From positions 1,121,261-1,185,260 of the forward strand of contig JAWQFM010000007.1 of NCBI GenBank assembly GCA_033442325.1: 64,000 bases of DNA, given 5' to 3'. Both the position numbers and the translations under genes were made by a program. Source of the stretch: Salpingoeca rosetta (lineage: Eukaryota > Protista > Choanoflagellata). Numbering within the stretch: the first letter of the stretch is position 1; each line of letters opens with the position of its first letter. The notes under the pieces are model-generated. The model worked only from the letters and a program-made list of their open reading frames with translations. It had not been told where the DNA came from and searched no databases. Shown one piece after another: positions 4,419 through 16,661 of the stretch.

Positions 4419-6945
4419 GGTGGTGCCCACAGGCGACGCGACACTAAGAAAACGAGAACTCCCTCAACACGAGGCGATGACTGACCTGAGACGCATAAAC
4501 TCGGCCAGGTCTTTGCACACCTCCTTGCCATTGCGGTGCTTCAGCACAAGCAGATCAAAGCCAGGCTTACCATCCGCCTAACAAATCGGCGTCAACACAG
4601 CGGCACAGCCATTGTGAGCGTGGTGGTATTATTGGGTACGCATAGCGACGCAAAGCATGCAACGCAGCTGAAGCATGCAGCCCAGCCATTGTGCCCACGA
4701 AAACGAAATGCCACACACACAGAGACACAGACAGATAGACACACAGACACGCACACACACACACAAGAGTGTCTAGGTGCAAGCTGTTGCAAGGCACGCA
4801 CCGCATCCTGCCAGAAGTTCTCGCGGTAGTGGAACTTGTTTGGATCGCGCATGCTCGTATCGCGCTGGAGCGTTTGGAAACTGGGATGCACCGGCTGGCA
4901 TCATGTCACACCAGAATGATGGCGACGTTGGTGAGTCTTGCAGTATGGAAACAGCAGCAGCTAGCAAGCGCACGTCACTATGAAAGCGCGCGCGCACACA
5001 CATACACACACAACACCACAAAACAACGCCAGCGTACCTGGGCCTGCTGCTGTGGCTGCTGTGGCTGCTGAAACTGCTGCTGCTGCTGGCCGGGTGGCAT
5101 TGGCGGCCCCTGTGGTGGCCCCTGTTGCTGCGGGTATCCTGGCTGCTGCATGTGCTGCATGTGCTGCTGCTGTGGTGGCTGTGGTGGCTGCTGCATCTGC
5201 ATCTGGCCGTACTGCGATGGCGGGCGCATTGGCGGGCGCGGGTTGCCGGGTGGTCCCGGGGGCGCGGGCTCGCCGTACATGGAGTTTCGCATCTGTGGTG
5301 GCTGCTGCGGGGGCTGTGGGGGCTGTGGGGGCTGCTGCGGGTCCTGGTCTGGCAGGTCGCCGTACACGTCGTCGTTCATGATGGGCGGCTCGGGTGCCGA
5401 GGGCACGAGCTTTGGCTTGGGGGCCTGCGGTGCCTGAGGCGGCCCACCGGGGCGGGGTGCCTGTGGCGGCTGCGGCGCACCCTGGCCCGGCATTGGCGGT
5501 GGAGGGATGGACACCTGGATGGCAGAGCTGGGGGCGATGATGCCATATGCATTCTCTTCCTCATCAGCCGGCTGCTGCGCCTGCGGCTTGTCCCACCGCG
5601 TTTCTGTTCAGTCCGCGTAAGCAAACGATGTGGTTGTGTGATAAAATGACACGAAGGGTGAGAAGAGTGAGGCACGGGCTGTTCAATAACAGCCGAGAGC
5701 GCAGCTGTGACATGTCACATGAAGTAATCCAACACAGCCACCAGAATCCGGACTCATCCATATCTTGTCTCTTGTGTTGTCACACCTACGAACACACACA
5801 CACACATTGTCTTTCTGTCTCTATCTCTGTCAATGTGTCCATTCATCTGTCTCCTTCACAAGCACAAGACAAGCGGGGAGCACGACACCTTGAGTTTGCT
5901 CGTTGACATAGTATGAACGGCCAGATGCCTGGTCAACAACGGCCTTCCAGCCCGGTGGCAGATCTGGCGAGCAAACGAAGGCGCAGGGTGCAAGAAGGGT
6001 GCAGTGAGTTTGAAAGGCCAAAGCCGTCTGAGTACCTGGCGAAAACCACAAAGACACACACATGCACACAACTGCACAGTTGCACACACACACACATGCA
6101 CAACTGCACACACACACATGCACACATTGCGCCGTACCGTCATTGCTTGGTGCTGCTGGTGCCTGAGGCGGTGCTGGTGGCGAAGGCACAGACACTGGCT
6201 GGGGCTGGGGCTCGGGCTCTTCTGGCGCGGGCGGGGGAGACGCCTGTTCCGGCTGTTGTCGCAGGCAAAAAAAAGAAGGGGGGGGGGAGGCAGCAGCAGC
6301 AGTACAGTCAGCTGCCACAATCGGTTCCAGCACACACGACATACGACACACGACACACGGCATACGACACACAACACACGATAATGGTTGAACATCGACA
6401 AGTATCACAGCAGCGACAGCAGCGACGACGACAGCATTAAGACATGTCAATCACCTCAGCAGGCTTCACGTAGCTGCTGGGAAACCATCTGTGAGCCCAT
6501 TCAGGACGCGGCATGTGTCGGTGTGCAGGTGTTAGAGGTTGGTGGTGGCAGGGTGCACCCGTGTATGCCGAGGTGGATCACACACAAGGTAACAGAGGCA
6601 CAGAGAGTGTCGTTGTCACACAAACCAAACATACAGCAGAGGCTGAAAAGAGTCAGACAGGTTTACAAAGTCAGATAGGCTTACAGACAGACAGACAGGC
6701 TTACAGACAGACAGGCTTACAGACAGACAGACACACGCAGACACACAACACATATCGAAACACACTCATCTACATCCAAACACACACATCCACACACACC
6801 CCGATTGCTGTGTTGATGTGTGCTTGCCCTTGGTCCAGCCCGAGGCGTCGCGTTGGATCACCTCGATGCGATCACCTGCCGCGAACGAGAGGCCATTCTC
6901 GTTTGTGGCTGAGAAAGCGTACAGCGCTTGCACCACGTCGGCCAT
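2304..6945 (-). CDS. GAS7: GAS7-like SH3 + WW + proline-rich + F-BAR protein (multi-exon)
   Basis: SH3: MADVVQALYAFSATNENGLSFAAGDRIEVIQRDASGW...WFPSSYV. WW: LPPGWKAVVDQASGRSYYVNEQTQ|ETRWDKP. Pro/Gln-rich linker. FCH/F-BAR: FHYRENFWQ|ADGKPGFDLLVLKHRNGKEVCKDLAEFMRLR|AAVEDQYAKALAKLAK...TFEDAERDR. The last exon ends PGASSSFA* (stop 2304-2306). The SH3-WW-F-BAR order is that of GAS7. Confidence 0.85.
4345..4424 (+). repeat. (GTT)n/(GGT)n microsatellite in a GAS7 intron
   Basis: Direct reading. Confidence 0.95.
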
Positions 6946-7515
6946 AGTCGACGATGATGATGATGATGATGATGATGAGGAGGAGGAGGAGGAGGAGGAG
7001 GAGGAGGAGCTGGCTTGGTCTTGGTCTTGGTGGTGGTGGTGGTGGTGGGTGATGCTGTGTTGTTGTGACAGTGGGCGGCGATAGTGGGTGTGTTTGTGTT
7101 TCTCCTTCGCGCTGTGCTGAGTCGAGTCCTGATGATTTGTCGTATCTTCCATAAAGTACCAGGAACCACACTCTGCACTTTTCTTATTCTTGCCGTCTCC
7201 GAACGCTGTCCTGCTCCGTCGCCGACAGCTCGCGGCGTTGCTGCCATCTCCACCACGACTTTGATTGAACAATCAATCAATACAAACACCCCCGCAACAC
7301 AAACACTCAACAAGTTCGCGCGCAGGGCCTTGATCCCTCTCCATACACCACACCGCACACCGCACACAGCACACCGCACACAGCACACCGGGAGTTGCTG
7401 CTGTAGTTGGTGGTGCTTGGTTTCTTCTCTCTTCCTTGCCTGTCGTTGCGAAAGGCAAACAACAACACCAACAACACCACCAACAACAACAACACCAACA
7501 CCACAACAGTGGGAG

Positions 7516-10500
7516 ATGGCGCTGAACAAGAACGACCAGCAAAACAAGAACAAGAAGGGCAACGGCGCCCGCAAGGAGCTCTTCTCCATCATCTGGCTCG
7601 TGTTTCTGCTGGGCTCAGCCGTCCTGCACTGGTGGGGATACTACTTCACGGACAAGTGGATTGTCACTCAGAAGGGCGCAACAGACCCCCGCACAGTGGG
7701 CCTGCTGCAAAACTACGAAAAGCACGATGCGTGGTTTGCCACCGTCATCTTGCTCGGCATCAGCCTCGCGTGCGTGACCATCGCCTTCCTGGCCGGGTTC
7801 TTCTTCTTCTTCGTCCGCCTCAAGCGCGCAGCGAAGACCCGCCACATCTGCCTCAAGGTCGCCAAGGTGTTCTCCTTGCTCGGCGCCTTGTGCATGTTTG
7901 CCGGCCTCATCGTGTTCCCAGCCGGATTCGAGTCCGCAAAGGTGCGTTGCGCGTTTGTGCGCATGCCGTGCGTGCAGTGTAAGCGTTTTTTGGCTGATTT
8001 GCACGCTACACGCACTGTGCTTTGTGTTTGTGTTGTGTGTGTGTGTGTGTTTGAGACTGCGCGCGCGTGTGTGTTTGAGACTGCGTGTGTTTTTGAGACT
8101 GTGTTTGATCTAGACATGTTCTGTACTTTATGCTTGTGGCTGTATGTGTGCTTGCGTGTGCGTGTCTTGTTTGTGATGATGATGGTCCCGTACCAGCACA
8201 ACAAGCACTGCCATGAAGTACTGTCGTGATGGCGAGGCTGCCTATCACCGCGCACCATGACGCACGTTACCTCACCACCATGTCCCGTGTTATCCTTCTT
8301 CTTGTTCTTTTTTTTTTGTTGTTGTTGCGCATTGCAGTTGCTGCCATGCTCCTTTGCGGCCACAAAGGAAGCCGCCTACCATCTGTGCAACCCTTGGCAA
8401 ACTGGCCTTGCCGTGTACCTTCTCATCGTGTCCCAAGTCCTGCTTACCCTCGCCATCTGCTTCTCCGCCTGCGTGCTGAGCAAAATCGATGAGGATCGCA
8501 AGGAGAAGGAGAAGCGCAAGCGCCAGGGCAAAGACGACGAGTACGTTTTCGTTCTGTTTTGGTCGTGGTTTGCCTTGTTTTGTTCTGCATGCTCCAACAA
8601 CCCCATTTCTATCGCCCTGTGCGGAGTGCTGTGCCATGCTGTGGTGTGATGTGGTGTGGTGTGGTGTGTGGTGTGGTGTGGTGTGGTGTGGTGTGGTGTG
8701 GTGTGGTGTGGTGTGGTGTTTGGTGTGGTGTGATGTGCTTTGGTATGTGTGCGTGTGGTGTGTGGTGGTGTGTGGTGGTGTGGTTTGGTGTGTGTGTGTG
8801 TGTGGTGTGTGGTGTGTGGTGTGTGGTGTTTTTGGCTCCTACTCTTGCACATGCGACACCCGTACTTGTCCATCGTATTCTTCAGATTGACCGCTGCTTT
8901 TGTTTTGGTCCTCTTTGCGTTTGTGTCGCTTTTGTGTTGTGTATGCCAAGTTCTCACCGCGCTCCTTGCTTGTCCAACACGCCCTTGTGCTGCATGGTGC
9001 GCTTGCCACGGCAGGTGGTTCGACAAGTACGGTACCGCTCCGCTCATCACCGAGACGGGCATGGGCGACGACGACACGGCGCACAACAAGGATCCACACC
9101 TCCTCGACGAGGTCATGGCCATGAACGCCAACGACGACATGGTGCGTCATTGCGTGCTATTTCATTTATGCGTTTGTGAGAGTGAGCGAGTGTGTGAGTA
9201 CGCGTGTTCTCGTGTGTGAGTACGTGTATTCTCGTGTGTGTGTGTACGTGTGTTCTCGTGCGTGTGAGTGTATGTGCGTTGTCGGGTGTGAGTGTATGTG
9301 CGTTGTCGGGTGTGTGTGTGCGTGAGAAAGTTTGTGTGCCCTTTGCCCCCCCAGGCGGTGCATGCCAAGCCGTGTACACAACAGGCCGCCCCATGTTCCG
9401 TGCCGTGCCTGCTGCCACTCGTTGGCTGCGCATGCCCTCTTTTTCGCTTTTTCGCTTTCCGCTCACCGCACTTGCCCTTTGCTCTCTGGTGAATGGTACG
9501 CTGCAGGAGAACATGCACATGCCTGGGTATCTGGACCTGGACGAGCCCCAGCAAGACCAGCAGAAGCAGCAGGAGAAGCGCGCCTCGTTCATGGAGACGG
9601 TGTTCGACAACGGCTACCTCGACTTTGCCCAGGAGTCGCAACAGCCAGGAGCACCCATCGACATGGTTGGTGGCAGCGGCGACGACGACGAGGATGAGGC
9701 CGGGTACCTTGAGTTTGGAGACGACGGCGTGCTGCGCGACACGACTGGCAATGAAATTGCGGAGACGTACCTCGACTTTGATGAGCCGGATGTGCAGCAG
9801 GAGTCGACGCAGCAGCTCGCGCCCGACACGGACACGGCGTACCTCGACTTTGACCAGGACGACGAGCCCGAGACGCTGTATCCCGATGCCCTCCCACTGA
9901 AGGCACTTGACGCCGGCGGCGCTGGTGATGACACCGACGCAGCGTACCTCGACTTTGAGCAAGAGGAGCAAGCAGAGGAGGATGAAGCAGAGGAAGAAGA
10001 GGAAGAAGAGGATGAAGAGGATGAAGAGGATGAGGTGGAGGCGACGAACGAGGGCTACTTGGACTTTGACCAAGCAGATGAGGAAGAGGACGAGGAAGAT
10101 GAGCAAGAAGAGCAGGAGCAAGAGGAAGAACAGGAGCAAGAGGAAGCAGAGGAAGAGGAAGAACAGGAGCAAGAGGAGGAGGAGGAAGCACCAGTGGCCG
10201 AGGAGGCGAACGAGGCATACCTCGACTTTGACCAAGCAGATGAGGAAGAGGACGAGGAAGATGAGGAAGAAGAGCAGGAGCAAGAGGAAGAACAGGAGCA
10301 AGAGGAGGAGGAAGCAGCACCAGTGGCCGAGGAGGCGAACGAGGCATACCTCGACTTTGACCAGGCCGATGAAGAGGAAGAGGAAGCAGAGCAAGAGGAA
10401 GAACAGGAGCAAGAGGAGGAGGAAGCAGCACCAGTGGCCGAGGAGGCGAACGAGGCATACCTCGACTTTGACCAGGCCGATGAAGAGGAAGCAGATCAAG

Positions 10501-10907
10501 AAGAAGAACCGGAACAAGAGGAGGAAGAAGCGCAAGAACAAGCGCCTGAGCAACAACAGCCCACCGCAGAGGCAGAGGACGTCGTCCTCAACTTTGATGA
10601 TGATGACAACGACGACGACAATGGCGGGTACCTCGACTTTGATGCCGACGATGATGCGGCCGTTGGGCCGGATGCAGCAGCTCAGCAGCAGCAGCAAAGC
10701 CAGGACCAGCAAACGCTGCCCTCGTTTATGGCGGATGCCATGACTGCCGACAACAACGACAACCCGATGGTTGACCTGGATGCGCTGTACGGCGATTTGG
10801 ATGAGGATGTGCTGGACTTGGACGCGTTTGATCCCGAGACAGACGAGATGGTGCTGGATCTCGATGCGGCTGGAGACGACGACGATGACGCCGATCAGTA
10901 CTTCTAA
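7516..10907 (+). CDS. LHFPL/claudin-superfamily four-TM protein with long acidic cytoplasmic tail bearing repeated YLDF motifs (exons 7516-7941, 8338-8540, 9015-9141, 9507-10907)
   Basis: Four hydrophobic helices: LFSIIWLVFLLGSAVL, WFATVILLGISLACVTIAFLAGFFFFFV, VFSLLGALCMFAGLIVFP, LAVYLLIVSQVLLTLAICFSACVL. The loop GLIVFPAGFES...C...YHLC..W resembles LHFPL 'IFPxGW-S...C...Y.LG.C...W'. All three introns are GT-AG and in phase. Confidence 0.75.
10040..10500 (+). repeat. Coding tandem repeat of about 111-129 bp units encoding (AP)VAEEANEAYLDFDQADEEE
   Basis: ccagtggccgaggaggcgaacgaggcatacctcgactttgacca recurs at 10191, 10320 and 10431, with a diverged copy near 10040-10080. Confidence 0.9.
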
Positions 10908-11720
10908 GCCACTGGCGCTGACCTGGGGCCCAGTGCCGGCATGCCACATCATCGCCATCTTGTTTTCTGTTGTCGGTGCTGCGCGTTTGTGGTGTGCAAC
11001 TGGGCCTCGCATTCCTTGCTGTGCGCGCGCTGTGGTGTACGTTTCCACGCTGTTTCCATTCCGTTTGCGCTGTTCACTCGCGTCCCACGTTGATTGGCGA
11101 TGTTGTGTTACTGTTTGTTTGTTTGTTTGCGCCCGGTCCCCACGCTGGTGTGGTGGCCGAGGTGCTTTTGCTCGCGTCGCTTATTTCTGTTTCACATTCC
11201 ATTGTTGACGTTTTGGCTCTTTGCCGCTCGCGGTGTTGTCGTTGCTGCTTCATTCTGGTGTTGACCTACCTGTGCGTTTGTGGCATGTCACACTTCTGCG
11301 AAGTGCTTGCTTGCAGCGCGACTTGACATCCCATCACATTTAATCCCATCACATTTCATAACATCACATCACTCCGCATACGAGCGGGTTGTTTGTTTGC
11401 GTGCTTTTTCATTTGATCGACCCCATATTCTTGCTTTCATTGCCCTCTTTCTGGCCGCCTTTGCTGTGGTCTTGTACTGTTATTAACTTGTTGCTTGCTT
11501 GCTCATTTTTGTTTGTTAATCAGCAACCAACACCAATATATCCAAACGATGACAAGAAAGCCCATGTGCGCGCGTGTGTGTGCTTGTTTGTGTGTTTGCA
11601 CGTGTGTGTACATGTTTGTTTGTGTATGTGTGTGCGTCTCTGCGTATGTCTGCGTGTACATTATTTGTTTGGTGATGGGAGATCACGGATGCATGCGCGG
11701 ACAGTAGCGGACGACAGCCG

Positions 11721-16661
<4,941 letters not shown>

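Follow-up and report, generated by a model that had tools for sequence, protein, structure and literature searches.

What does a four-helix membrane protein do with a tail of about 525 amino acids that repeats one short tyrosine motif 11 times? This question is raised by a gene at 7516-10907 in a 64,000-nucleotide stretch of the genome of the choanoflagellate Salpingoeca rosetta (assembly GCA_033442325.1, contig JAWQFM010000007.1, positions 1,121,261 to 1,185,260 of the forward strand; we call this stretch the window, and all of our coordinates refer to it). An earlier note on this DNA proposed that the gene encodes a tetraspan protein, similar to LHFPL or claudin proteins, with an acidic scaffold tail, and that selection maintains a clathrin-box-like core within the tail's repeated motifs. 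We think that there is about an even chance that the protein is a multivalent phosphotyrosine docking adaptor that is anchored by its tetraspan domain and comparable to LAT, Gab, or p130Cas. The tyrosine motif itself, and not a clathrin box, appears to be what the tails of this family conserve.

The gene is real and expressed, and its tail exon is spliced to the exons that encode the transmembrane (TM) helices, as the earlier note had assumed for the junction between 9141 and 9507. Splicing the genomic sequence gives four exons on the + strand (Table 1) with an in-frame coding sequence of 2157 nt, or 718 amino acids, and all three introns are GT..AG. For 7300-11200, we compared this model to one stranded run of raw RNA reads and to three independent sets of transcript contigs. 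The joints seen in RNA were 7939>8336, 8540>9015, and 9140>9506, which match the model within an ambiguity of 1-2 bases. The joint at 8540>9015 was seen in 28 stranded reads and in all 3 contig sets, and the joint to the tail exon (9140>9506, GT..AG) was seen in 22 reads and in all 3 contig sets. Single contigs from three independent RNA runs cover 7300-7939, 8336-8540, 9015-9140, and 9506-10091. Read depth dropped to nothing across the first two introns and to roughly one-tenth across intron 3, and nearly all read mates fell on a single strand, which is the pattern that a + strand mRNA should give in a standard stranded library. Also, the transcript of the ortholog from Microstomoeca roanoka (P0001) is continuous across all three junction positions.

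Intron 3 (9142-9506) has some coverage: reads are 5-7 deep, versus about 40 in the exons, and contigs reach about 5% of exon depth. Reading through from exon 3 into this intron, there is a stop codon at 9217-9219. A transcript that retains intron 3 would encode the tetraspan domain without any of the tyrosine motifs, or these reads may just reflect unspliced precursor. All three introns are rich in microsatellites of the (GGTGT)n or (GT)n type (8020-8090, 8620-8840, and 9160-9330).

The four predicted helices are at residues 23-45, 74-100, 114-136, and 165-189. The N-terminus is rich in Lys and Arg, the loop between the second and third helices is basic (5 K/R and no D/E), and another basic cluster directly follows the fourth helix (residues 190-207). 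By the positive-inside rule, these three basic segments predict that both termini, and hence the tail, are in the cytosol.

The earlier note's assignment of this domain to the claudin/LHFPL group holds up in fold predictions. We scored the S. rosetta protein against Pfam exon by exon rather than as a whole spliced protein. Exon 1 alone, which encodes the first three helices, scored just below the cut-offs for Claudin_3 (PF06653, 26.4 bits, cut-off 28.7) and for L_HMGIC_fpl (PF10242, 23.1 bits, cut-off 25.2). In exons 2, 3, and 4, Pfam found no domain; the sole match was a spurious, low-complexity one to Utp14. The full-length Microstomoeca ortholog scored 17.6-19.3 bits for L_HMGIC_fpl, and three other relatives passed the cut-off (P0010 with 38.0 bits, P0008 with 36.3 bits, and P0020 with 30.5 bits). 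P0010 also scored 27.0 bits for Claudin_3, and an ortholog in ENA (P0002) has a precomputed match to PF06653. Across the family, L_HMGIC_fpl, Claudin_3, and Atthog are at or near their thresholds, and membership in these strict Pfam families is borderline.

We also modeled the Microstomoeca ortholog (P0001, residues 1-235), whose TM domain is 59% identical to that of the S. rosetta protein, using AlphaFold2 and an 18-sequence alignment of the family. In the model, there are four long helices, and each of the two outer loops contains short strands; the mean predicted local distance difference test score (pLDDT) is 85.9. When this model was compared to PDB with Foldseek, the matches were TARP gamma-8 and gamma-2, GARLH4 (LHFPL4), and claudin-15, each with a probability of 1.00, E of about 1e-4, and TM-scores by target of 0.65-0.70. 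Structural neighbors of the Monosiga brevicollis ortholog in the ESM Atlas include claudin-25, pickel, MOSMO, TMEM47, and clarin-3. The prediction that the TM domain (the N-terminal ~190 residues) has the claudin/TARP/LHFPL fold is sound.

The conserved columns in the family alignment are C170, P172, P146, and G148. Although a Trp and V-G-L-L are present in loop 1 (residues 46-73), Cys is absent, so the protein does not have the classical claudin signature in this loop (W-GLW-C-C); the family's Cys pair is in loop 2 instead. Just past the basic cluster, the Microstomoeca ortholog shares every residue of the stretch W-F-D-K-Y-G-T-A-P-L, the ENA ortholog has a single substitution in it, and most members of the family have a W-[YF]-[DE]-type motif after the basic cluster.

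If the tail were outside the cell instead, then its tyrosines could be sulfated, as in PSGL-1 or the N-termini of chemokine receptors. They are flanked by Asp or Glu with few basic residues nearby, which fits the sulfation consensus. We consider this highly improbable, as the basic segments indicate a cytosolic C-terminus, both the Cys pair and the conserved Trp are in the two loops on the other side of the membrane, and all of the solved claudin-fold proteins that were matched by Foldseek have this same topology.

An exhaustive search of 1.84 billion representative proteins with a profile of the TM domain gave only 26 matches at E < 1e-3, and every relative with a taxonomic name is from a choanoflagellate. 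These are Microstomoeca roanoka (the nearest ortholog), Hartaetosiga gracilis, Salpingoeca infusionum, Monosiga brevicollis, Choanoflagellata sp. UC4, Barroeca monosierra, Salpingoeca macrocollata, and Codosiga hollandica. Among the same proteins and at the same threshold, the profile did not reach the animal LHFPL or claudin proteins. We conclude from these searches that the family is a separate branch and, as far as it has been sampled, specific to choanoflagellates. A word-index search with the tail matched only the Microstomoeca ortholog. The only annotated member of the family is XP_001750430 from Monosiga brevicollis, which is annotated as "uncharacterized protein".

We did not find any paper that describes this family (in the literature on LHFPL together with choanoflagellates or on the Monosiga accessions), and, in agreement with the earlier note, we found no description in the literature of a protein that combines a tetraspan with an array of tyrosine motifs. 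The claudin fold and the tyrosine-motif scaffold are known kinds of things; it is their combination, and the choanoflagellate-restricted family, that are undescribed in the literature that we found.

The tail is of low complexity, with 42% Asp plus Glu, only 15 Lys or Arg, and a net charge of -204. The 11 tyrosine motifs and the four tyrosine-less variants (VLNFD, MVDLD, and two copies of VLDLD) that the earlier note listed after the four helices are all present (Table 1). In 20,000 shuffles of the tail that preserved its composition, the tyrosine motif ([GAT]-Y-L-[DE]-[FL]) was expected 0.1 times and never occurred more than 4 times. Part of the array is recent: the tandem duplication at 10120-10531 gave three near-identical copies that end in A-Y-L-D-F-D-Q-A-D. 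Because the transcript contigs are interrupted from about 10091 to 10462, the copy number of these three motifs rests on the genome assembly. Three reads in this region "go back 72", and the number of duplicated units may be polymorphic or mis-assembled. The other eight copies have differing flanks and align to copies in the ortholog.

The tail also contains L-Y-P-D-A-L (residues 376-381, 9876-9893), which resembles the YPx(n)L late-domain motif that binds ALIX, in a stretch that is absent from the Microstomoeca ortholog.

As the earlier note predicted, the motifs are better conserved than the spacers between them. Between S. rosetta and the Microstomoeca ortholog, the motif cores are 64% identical and the spacers are 18% identical, and arrays are found in the long tails of six species, with 7-14 copies per ortholog. 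Nearly all of the long tails keep arrays of the form [G/A/S]-Y-[L/I]-[D/E]-hydrophobic, while length, acidity, and spacers vary. The Microstomoeca tail (29% Asp plus Glu) has nine copies of Y-L-[D/Q]-[F/L/V] and the Barroeca tail has ten copies of Y-[L/M/I/F]-[D/E/Q]-[F/I]. In S. infusionum (25% Asp plus Glu), there are eleven copies of [G/A]-Y-[L/I]-[D/E], mostly as A-Y-L-D-[I/V]-E-E-P, and in Monosiga (21%), there are ten motifs, mostly D-G-Y-L-D-V. The tail of P0010 is rich in Pro, Ala, and Ser and has just 9% Asp plus Glu, but its S-Y-L-D-V-G-R-S repeats are kept.

These comparisons bear on whether the tail is simply a polyanionic, low-complexity expansion, such as a buffer for Ca2+ or other cations, an electrostatic spacer, or the product of neutral slippage, with motifs that were carried along by duplication and have no reader. 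The high negative charge fits this idea, and GAG/GAA-rich, microsatellite-like repeats and the recent duplication of 111-129 nt would explain about 200 amino acids and three copies of the motif. On the other hand, the motif is kept in tails whose acidic content falls from 42% in S. rosetta to 9% in P0010, and the alignment of the eight non-duplicated copies, which have different flanks, to copies in the ortholog also counts against it. Because the non-acidic tail of P0010 keeps the motif, a polyanion is refuted as the main explanation, and we consider this account of the tail to be very unlikely. Across these tails, selection acts on the tyrosine motif and not on the acidity or the length of the tail.

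To describe the motif, we pooled 76 tail tyrosines from six species and computed information relative to the composition of the tails. The strongest preferences were for Leu at +1 (2.1 bits), Asp at +2 (1.3 bits), Phe, Val, Leu, or Ile at +3 (1.2 bits), and Gly, Ala, or Ser at -1 (1.05 bits; 59 of the 76 tyrosines). Ile, Ala, His, or Thr at -4 (about 1.0 bits), Asp or Asn at -3 (0.7 bits), and Glu or Gln at +5 (0.7 bits) were also favored. No residue was favored at +4 (0.35 bits). The family consensus is [D/N]-x-[G/A/S]-Y-[L/I]-[D/E]-[V/I/L/F]-x-[E/Q], and 49 of the 76 tyrosines are in the context Y[LIM][DE]. The tyrosine is hardly ever replaced: [GAST]-[FW]-[LIM]-[DE] occurs once, with Phe, versus 48 times with Tyr. 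Since hydrophobic substitutes are not tolerated in the arrays, the tyrosine hydroxyl probably matters.

The earlier note had argued that the selected core is a clathrin-box-like sequence (hydrophobic-hydrophobic-x-hydrophobic-acidic) that happens to overlap a tyrosine, with the tyrosine-less copies as variants of this core. This part of the note does not agree with the comparison across species. The acidic residue at +4, which would be the fifth position of the box, is found in only 23 of the 49 Y[LIM][DE] copies, and the canonical clathrin box (L[IVLMF]x[IVLMF][DE], as in ELM) has no matches in the nine tails from S. rosetta and eight relatives. Because the fifth position is not selected and the canonical pattern is missing, we conclude that selection is on the tyrosine motif and not on a clathrin box. 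Also, the tyrosine-less copies ([V/I]-L-D-[L/F]-D) form a separate C-terminal module, which is found only in S. rosetta and its two closest relatives, Microstomoeca (VDLD, VLDLD, and ILDLD) and Barroeca (VLDIG and ILDFD). This module is not present in the tails of Monosiga or S. infusionum; in its place, S. infusionum has three copies of T-F-V-L-G-E-D.

A more general form of the clathrin-box idea is that the motifs are hydrophobic docking sites in an acidic setting that work without phosphorylation. They might bind the terminal domain of clathrin, an adaptor ear or GAE domain (which recognize motifs of the acidic-Phe type, aromatic-x-[DE]-aromatic), or a choanoflagellate-specific partner. Within the clade of S. 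rosetta, Microstomoeca, and Barroeca, Y-L-D-F-D and V-L-D-L-D do share the shape hydrophobic-L-D-hydrophobic-D, and the acidic context resembles that of ear-binding motifs. We consider this unlikely: besides the results for the canonical box and for +4, hydrophobic contacts would tolerate replacement of the tyrosine by Phe, Trp, or Leu, and the motifs of Monosiga, S. infusionum, and P0010 have Val or Ile at +3 and then Thr, Gly, Gln, or Ala.

Several other motif classes were considered and rejected. An FFAT motif must have a small residue at position 5, where these motifs have Phe, and a LIR motif should end in Leu, Ile, or Val. The AP-4 motif (YX[FYL][FL]E) was also rejected. A DxxLL at residue 236 and the LYPDAL at residue 376 are not conserved in the orthologs. 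As for an NxxY/PTB motif, Asn is frequent at -3 in Monosiga and S. infusionum, but Microstomoeca has Asp there.

The main rival is that the motifs are sorting signals of the unphosphorylated Yxx-hydrophobic type (GYxx-hydrophobic, in an acidic setting) and are read by the mu subunits of AP-2 or AP-3. The protein itself would then be cargo bound for endocytosis or for the lysosome, or else a cargo adaptor, and phosphorylation would at most switch binding off, as it does for the YVKM motif of CTLA-4. The S. rosetta tail has 12 matches to the Yxx-hydrophobic pattern, although these are matches to the pattern only. In 40 of the 49 Y[LIM][DE] copies, the +3 residue is bulky and hydrophobic, and the strict requirement for Tyr and the small residues at -1 fit binding by mu subunits as well. 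Gly at -1 together with acidic neighbors favors lysosomal or AP-3 signals, such as those of LAMP1, LAMP2, and CD63. The distal clathrin-box-like [V/I]LDLD of the three closest species, and an NPx[F/Y] motif in four distant members, would also fit a trafficking role.

Against this, known sorting signals act singly and depend on their position, near the membrane or near the C-terminus, and arrays of 9-14 copies over 400 residues are not known for this class. In the choanoflagellate tails, +1 Leu and +2 Asp are more informative than +3, whereas mu2 reads mainly the Tyr and +3. Furthermore, the other 9 of the 49 copies have Thr, Ala, or Pro at +3 (such as GYIDT in S. infusionum, or PYLDP and AYMDP in P0010), which a mu subunit would not be expected to bind. 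We view the sorting-signal reading as possible but doubtful. The motifs could also serve both as sorting signals and as a phospho-switch. It is well established that a single tyrosine motif can be read by AP-2 when unphosphorylated and by an SH2 domain when phosphorylated.

We prefer the docking adaptor for several reasons. First, the tyrosine is strictly invariant in the arrays. Second, high valency (9-14 copies) with a regular spacing of 21-57 residues is typical of LAT, Gab, IRS, p130Cas, and nephrin and is atypical of sorting signals. Third, the family is restricted to a lineage that has a very large phosphotyrosine toolkit. Fourth, the motif is identical to the animal pY-L-D-L sites, which are the docking sequence for SHP2 on Gab1 and Gab2 and for PLC-gamma on FGFR1-4. 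As is usual for docking scaffolds, multiple conserved tyrosine motifs lie on a disordered chain that is predicted to be cytosolic. In addition, two-SH2 phosphatases of the PTPN6/11 type predate animals (PMC4342544), and S. rosetta has active tyrosine phosphorylation that responds to inhibitors (PMC11984502).

We propose that the tetraspan domain is a membrane anchor, most likely in the plasma membrane, where it might adjoin a partner membrane protein in the way that TARPs and LHFPL4/5 adjoin channels. The tail would be a multivalent docking platform. Choanoflagellates have many tyrosine kinases, some of which would phosphorylate the tail's tyrosines, and the resulting pY-[L/I]-D-hydrophobic sites would recruit proteins with SH2 (or PTB) domains. 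The spacing of the motifs would suit readers with tandem SH2 domains, and having many sites per chain would allow effectors to cluster, as with LAT, nephrin, and p130Cas. The distal tyrosine-less pair ([V/I]-L-D-[L/F]-D), or NPx[F/Y] in distant members, may be a separate signal for trafficking or for a partner. A more specific version is that the protein is a "tetraspan LAT": a claudin-fold module, which may assist a channel or receptor as an auxiliary subunit, and whose pY-L-D-hydrophobic array couples it to effectors with tandem SH2 domains (SHP-type phosphatases, for example). We offer this version only tentatively.

Four of the more distant members (P0007, P0008, P0009, and P0010) each have one NPx[F/Y] motif (NPMF, NPDF, NPYF, and NPLY). 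The motif lies no more than about 70 residues from the C-terminus and has acidic residues after it; it could be a PTB/FERM or endocytic signal that replaces the [V/I]LDLD pair. In P0020, from Choanoflagellata sp. UC4, the array is on an N-terminal cytosolic extension (residues 1-190) instead of on the C-terminal tail, with at least 6 copies of [D/N]-N-Y-[L/I/F]-[D/Y]-T. Thus, on this one type of anchor, the array has either changed its place or evolved two times.

In a sister clade, P0015 (residues 1-170) and P0017 (residues 20-200) have an N-terminal, SH2-like extension fused to their tetraspan, and the motif E-G-Y-L-D-V occurs once, close to the C-terminus. The SH2-like traits are a W-Y-H-G-x-I-S start, F-H-L-V-Y-K, K-H-Y-N-V, and F-D-S-F-E-L-L-L-D-Y-F, and the domain is interrupted by a helical (coiled-coil) hairpin of about 70 residues. 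Against the sequences in PDB, the extension matched the SH2 domain of Grb10 colinearly, with an E value of only 0.9. Its feature neighbors in the Atlas were all SH2 clusters, with scores (0.76-0.82) that are too low to count alone. Pfam found no domain in the extension, an AlphaFold2 model from three sequences had pLDDT below 50 in this part, and a further word search with the extension found only near-identical copies, which had no Pfam matches. The identity of this extension as an SH2 domain is unproven; we regard it as a lead, which at most would lend weak side support.

A number of points weigh against a docking adaptor. For the well-studied animal tyrosine kinases, a small residue at -1 is less than optimal, and the motif fits the unphosphorylated Yxx-hydrophobic or GYxx-hydrophobic class of adaptor-binding sequences equally well. 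The phosphotyrosine readers that we name are candidates, and the subcellular location is a prediction. The SH2-like domain was not significant in any single test, and the phosphate-binding Arg of strand beta-B5 (F-L-V-R) is replaced by Tyr. Finally, we found no S. rosetta phosphosite data set in the literature; the p38 study of this organism has tables from kinase probes, and its supplements contain no phosphosites and no peptides with the motif (PMC11984502).

Table 1. Features of the S. rosetta tetraspan gene and its tail, in window coordinates. Helices and basic cluster are from hydropathy and loop charges; Tyr numbers are residues of the 718-amino-acid protein; UTR, untranslated region.
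Feature	Position	Strand	Description
5' UTR	7300-7515	+	minimum extent transcribed; stranded read depth 8-20; contigs reach upstream of 7300
Exon 1	7516-7941	+	start codon, basic N-terminus, TM1, extracellular loop 1, TM2, basic intracellular loop, TM3
TM1	7582-7650	+	exon 1
TM2	7735-7815	+	exon 1
TM3	7855-7923	+	exon 1
Exon 2	8338-8540	+	extracellular loop 2 with family-conserved PC...C-x-PW, TM4, basic juxtamembrane cluster
TM4	8404-8478	+	exon 2
Basic juxtamembrane cluster	8479-8538	+	exon 2
Exon 3	9015-9141	+	juxtamembrane W-F-D-K-Y-G-T-A-P-L (9016-9045), then start of acidic tail
Exon 4	9507-10907	+	466-amino-acid disordered acidic tail and stop codon
Array of 11 Tyr motifs	9525-10640	+	motif spacing 21-57 residues
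Tyr motif 1	9525-9539	+	GYLDL, Tyr 260
Tyr motif 2	9612-9626	+	GYLDF, Tyr 289
Tyr motif 3	9702-9716	+	GYLEF, Tyr 319
Tyr motif 4	9765-9779	+	TYLDF, Tyr 340
Tyr motif 5	9837-9851	+	AYLDF, Tyr 364
Tyr motif 6	9942-9956	+	AYLDF, Tyr 399
Tyr motif 7	10053-10067	+	GYLDF, Tyr 436
Tyr motif 8	10215-10229	+	AYLDF, Tyr 490
Tyr motif 9	10344-10358	+	AYLDF, Tyr 533
Tyr motif 10	10455-10469	+	AYLDF, Tyr 570
Tyr motif 11	10626-10640	+	GYLDF, Tyr 627
Recent tandem duplication	10120-10531	+	units of 129 and 111 nt, 84-90% matches (Tandem Repeats Finder)
Tyr-less VLNFD	10584-10598	+	
Tyr-less MVDLD	10767-10781	+	C-terminal module
Tyr-less VLDLD	10809-10823	+	C-terminal module
Tyr-less VLDLD	10851-10865	+	C-terminal module
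3' UTR	10908-11200	+	minimum extent transcribed; read depth 49-92; contigs continue past 11200

The upstream neighbor (5830-6960, - strand) is divergently transcribed. It encodes an SH3 domain (PF00018, 40.9 bits, in the open reading frame at 6766-7272) that is preceded by a run of Ser, and, further on, a WW domain (PF00397, open reading frame at 5830-6450). Only about 550 nt separate the start of its first coding exon from the ATG of the tetraspan gene, so a bidirectional promoter region is probably common to both genes. The downstream neighbor (12327-12950, - strand) matches the C-terminal domain of a dihydroxy-acid/6-phosphogluconate dehydratase (PF24877, 55.8 bits) and has no evident link to the tetraspan.

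Choanoflagellates have repertoires of tyrosine kinases, tyrosine phosphatases, and SH2 domains that are as large as those of animals, yet hardly any of their physiological substrates or docking proteins are known. This family is a small, lineage-restricted, and genetically tractable candidate (S. rosetta can be transfected and edited) whose tails strongly conserve just one feature, an array of a single tyrosine motif that matches the SHP2 and PLC-gamma docking sequences of animals. If it is a scaffold, then the claudin/LHFPL fold, which in animals is that of a junction protein or a channel auxiliary, served in their sister lineage as the anchor for a long signaling scaffold. If the "tetraspan LAT" idea is correct, then this would be the first defined endogenous multi-site substrate of tyrosine kinases, and signaling hub, in the sister group of animals, and an independent invention of the transmembrane-adaptor principle. 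If the motifs are sorting signals instead, then the family would still be an unusual multivalent cargo.

The membrane domain is best compared to LHFPL/TMHS/GARLH, the TARP gamma subunits, the claudins, and MOSMO, which share its four-helix bundle, two extracellular loops, and cytosolic termini. In animals, proteins with this fold have tails that are short (tens of residues, with a maximum of about 120 amino acids in TARPs), and we know of none with an array of tyrosine motifs. TARPs, LHFPL4, and LHFPL5 are auxiliary subunits whose tails tie channels to cytoplasmic scaffolds, and this analogy suggests a channel or receptor as the partner of the S. rosetta anchor.

The tail can be compared to three kinds of systems. 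The GYxx-hydrophobic signals of LAMP1, LAMP2, and CD63, and the YVKM of CTLA-4, have a small residue, Tyr, and a hydrophobic residue at +3 in an acidic context, as the S. rosetta tail does. The clathrin box is L-[LI]-[DEN]-[LF]-[DE], and the C-terminal copies V-L-D-L-D, I-L-D-L-D, and I-L-D-F-D differ from L-L-D-L-D only at the first position; this box-like module is limited to the three closest species, and the tyrosine motifs do not have a conserved fifth acid. The third kind is the animal phosphotyrosine scaffolds (LAT, PAG/Cbp, SIT, Gab1/2, IRS, p130Cas, and nephrin), which, like the S. rosetta tail, are membrane-associated disordered chains with many tyrosine motifs in an acidic setting. 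The SHP2 site of Gab1 and Gab2 (Y-L-D-L-D) and the PLC-gamma site of FGFR1-4 (Y-L-D-L) look much like the S. rosetta motif. These scaffolds are not homologous to the S. rosetta protein, and the anchors differ as well: the animal scaffolds use a single palmitoylated helix or a PH domain, and the S. rosetta protein has a predicted four-helix claudin fold.

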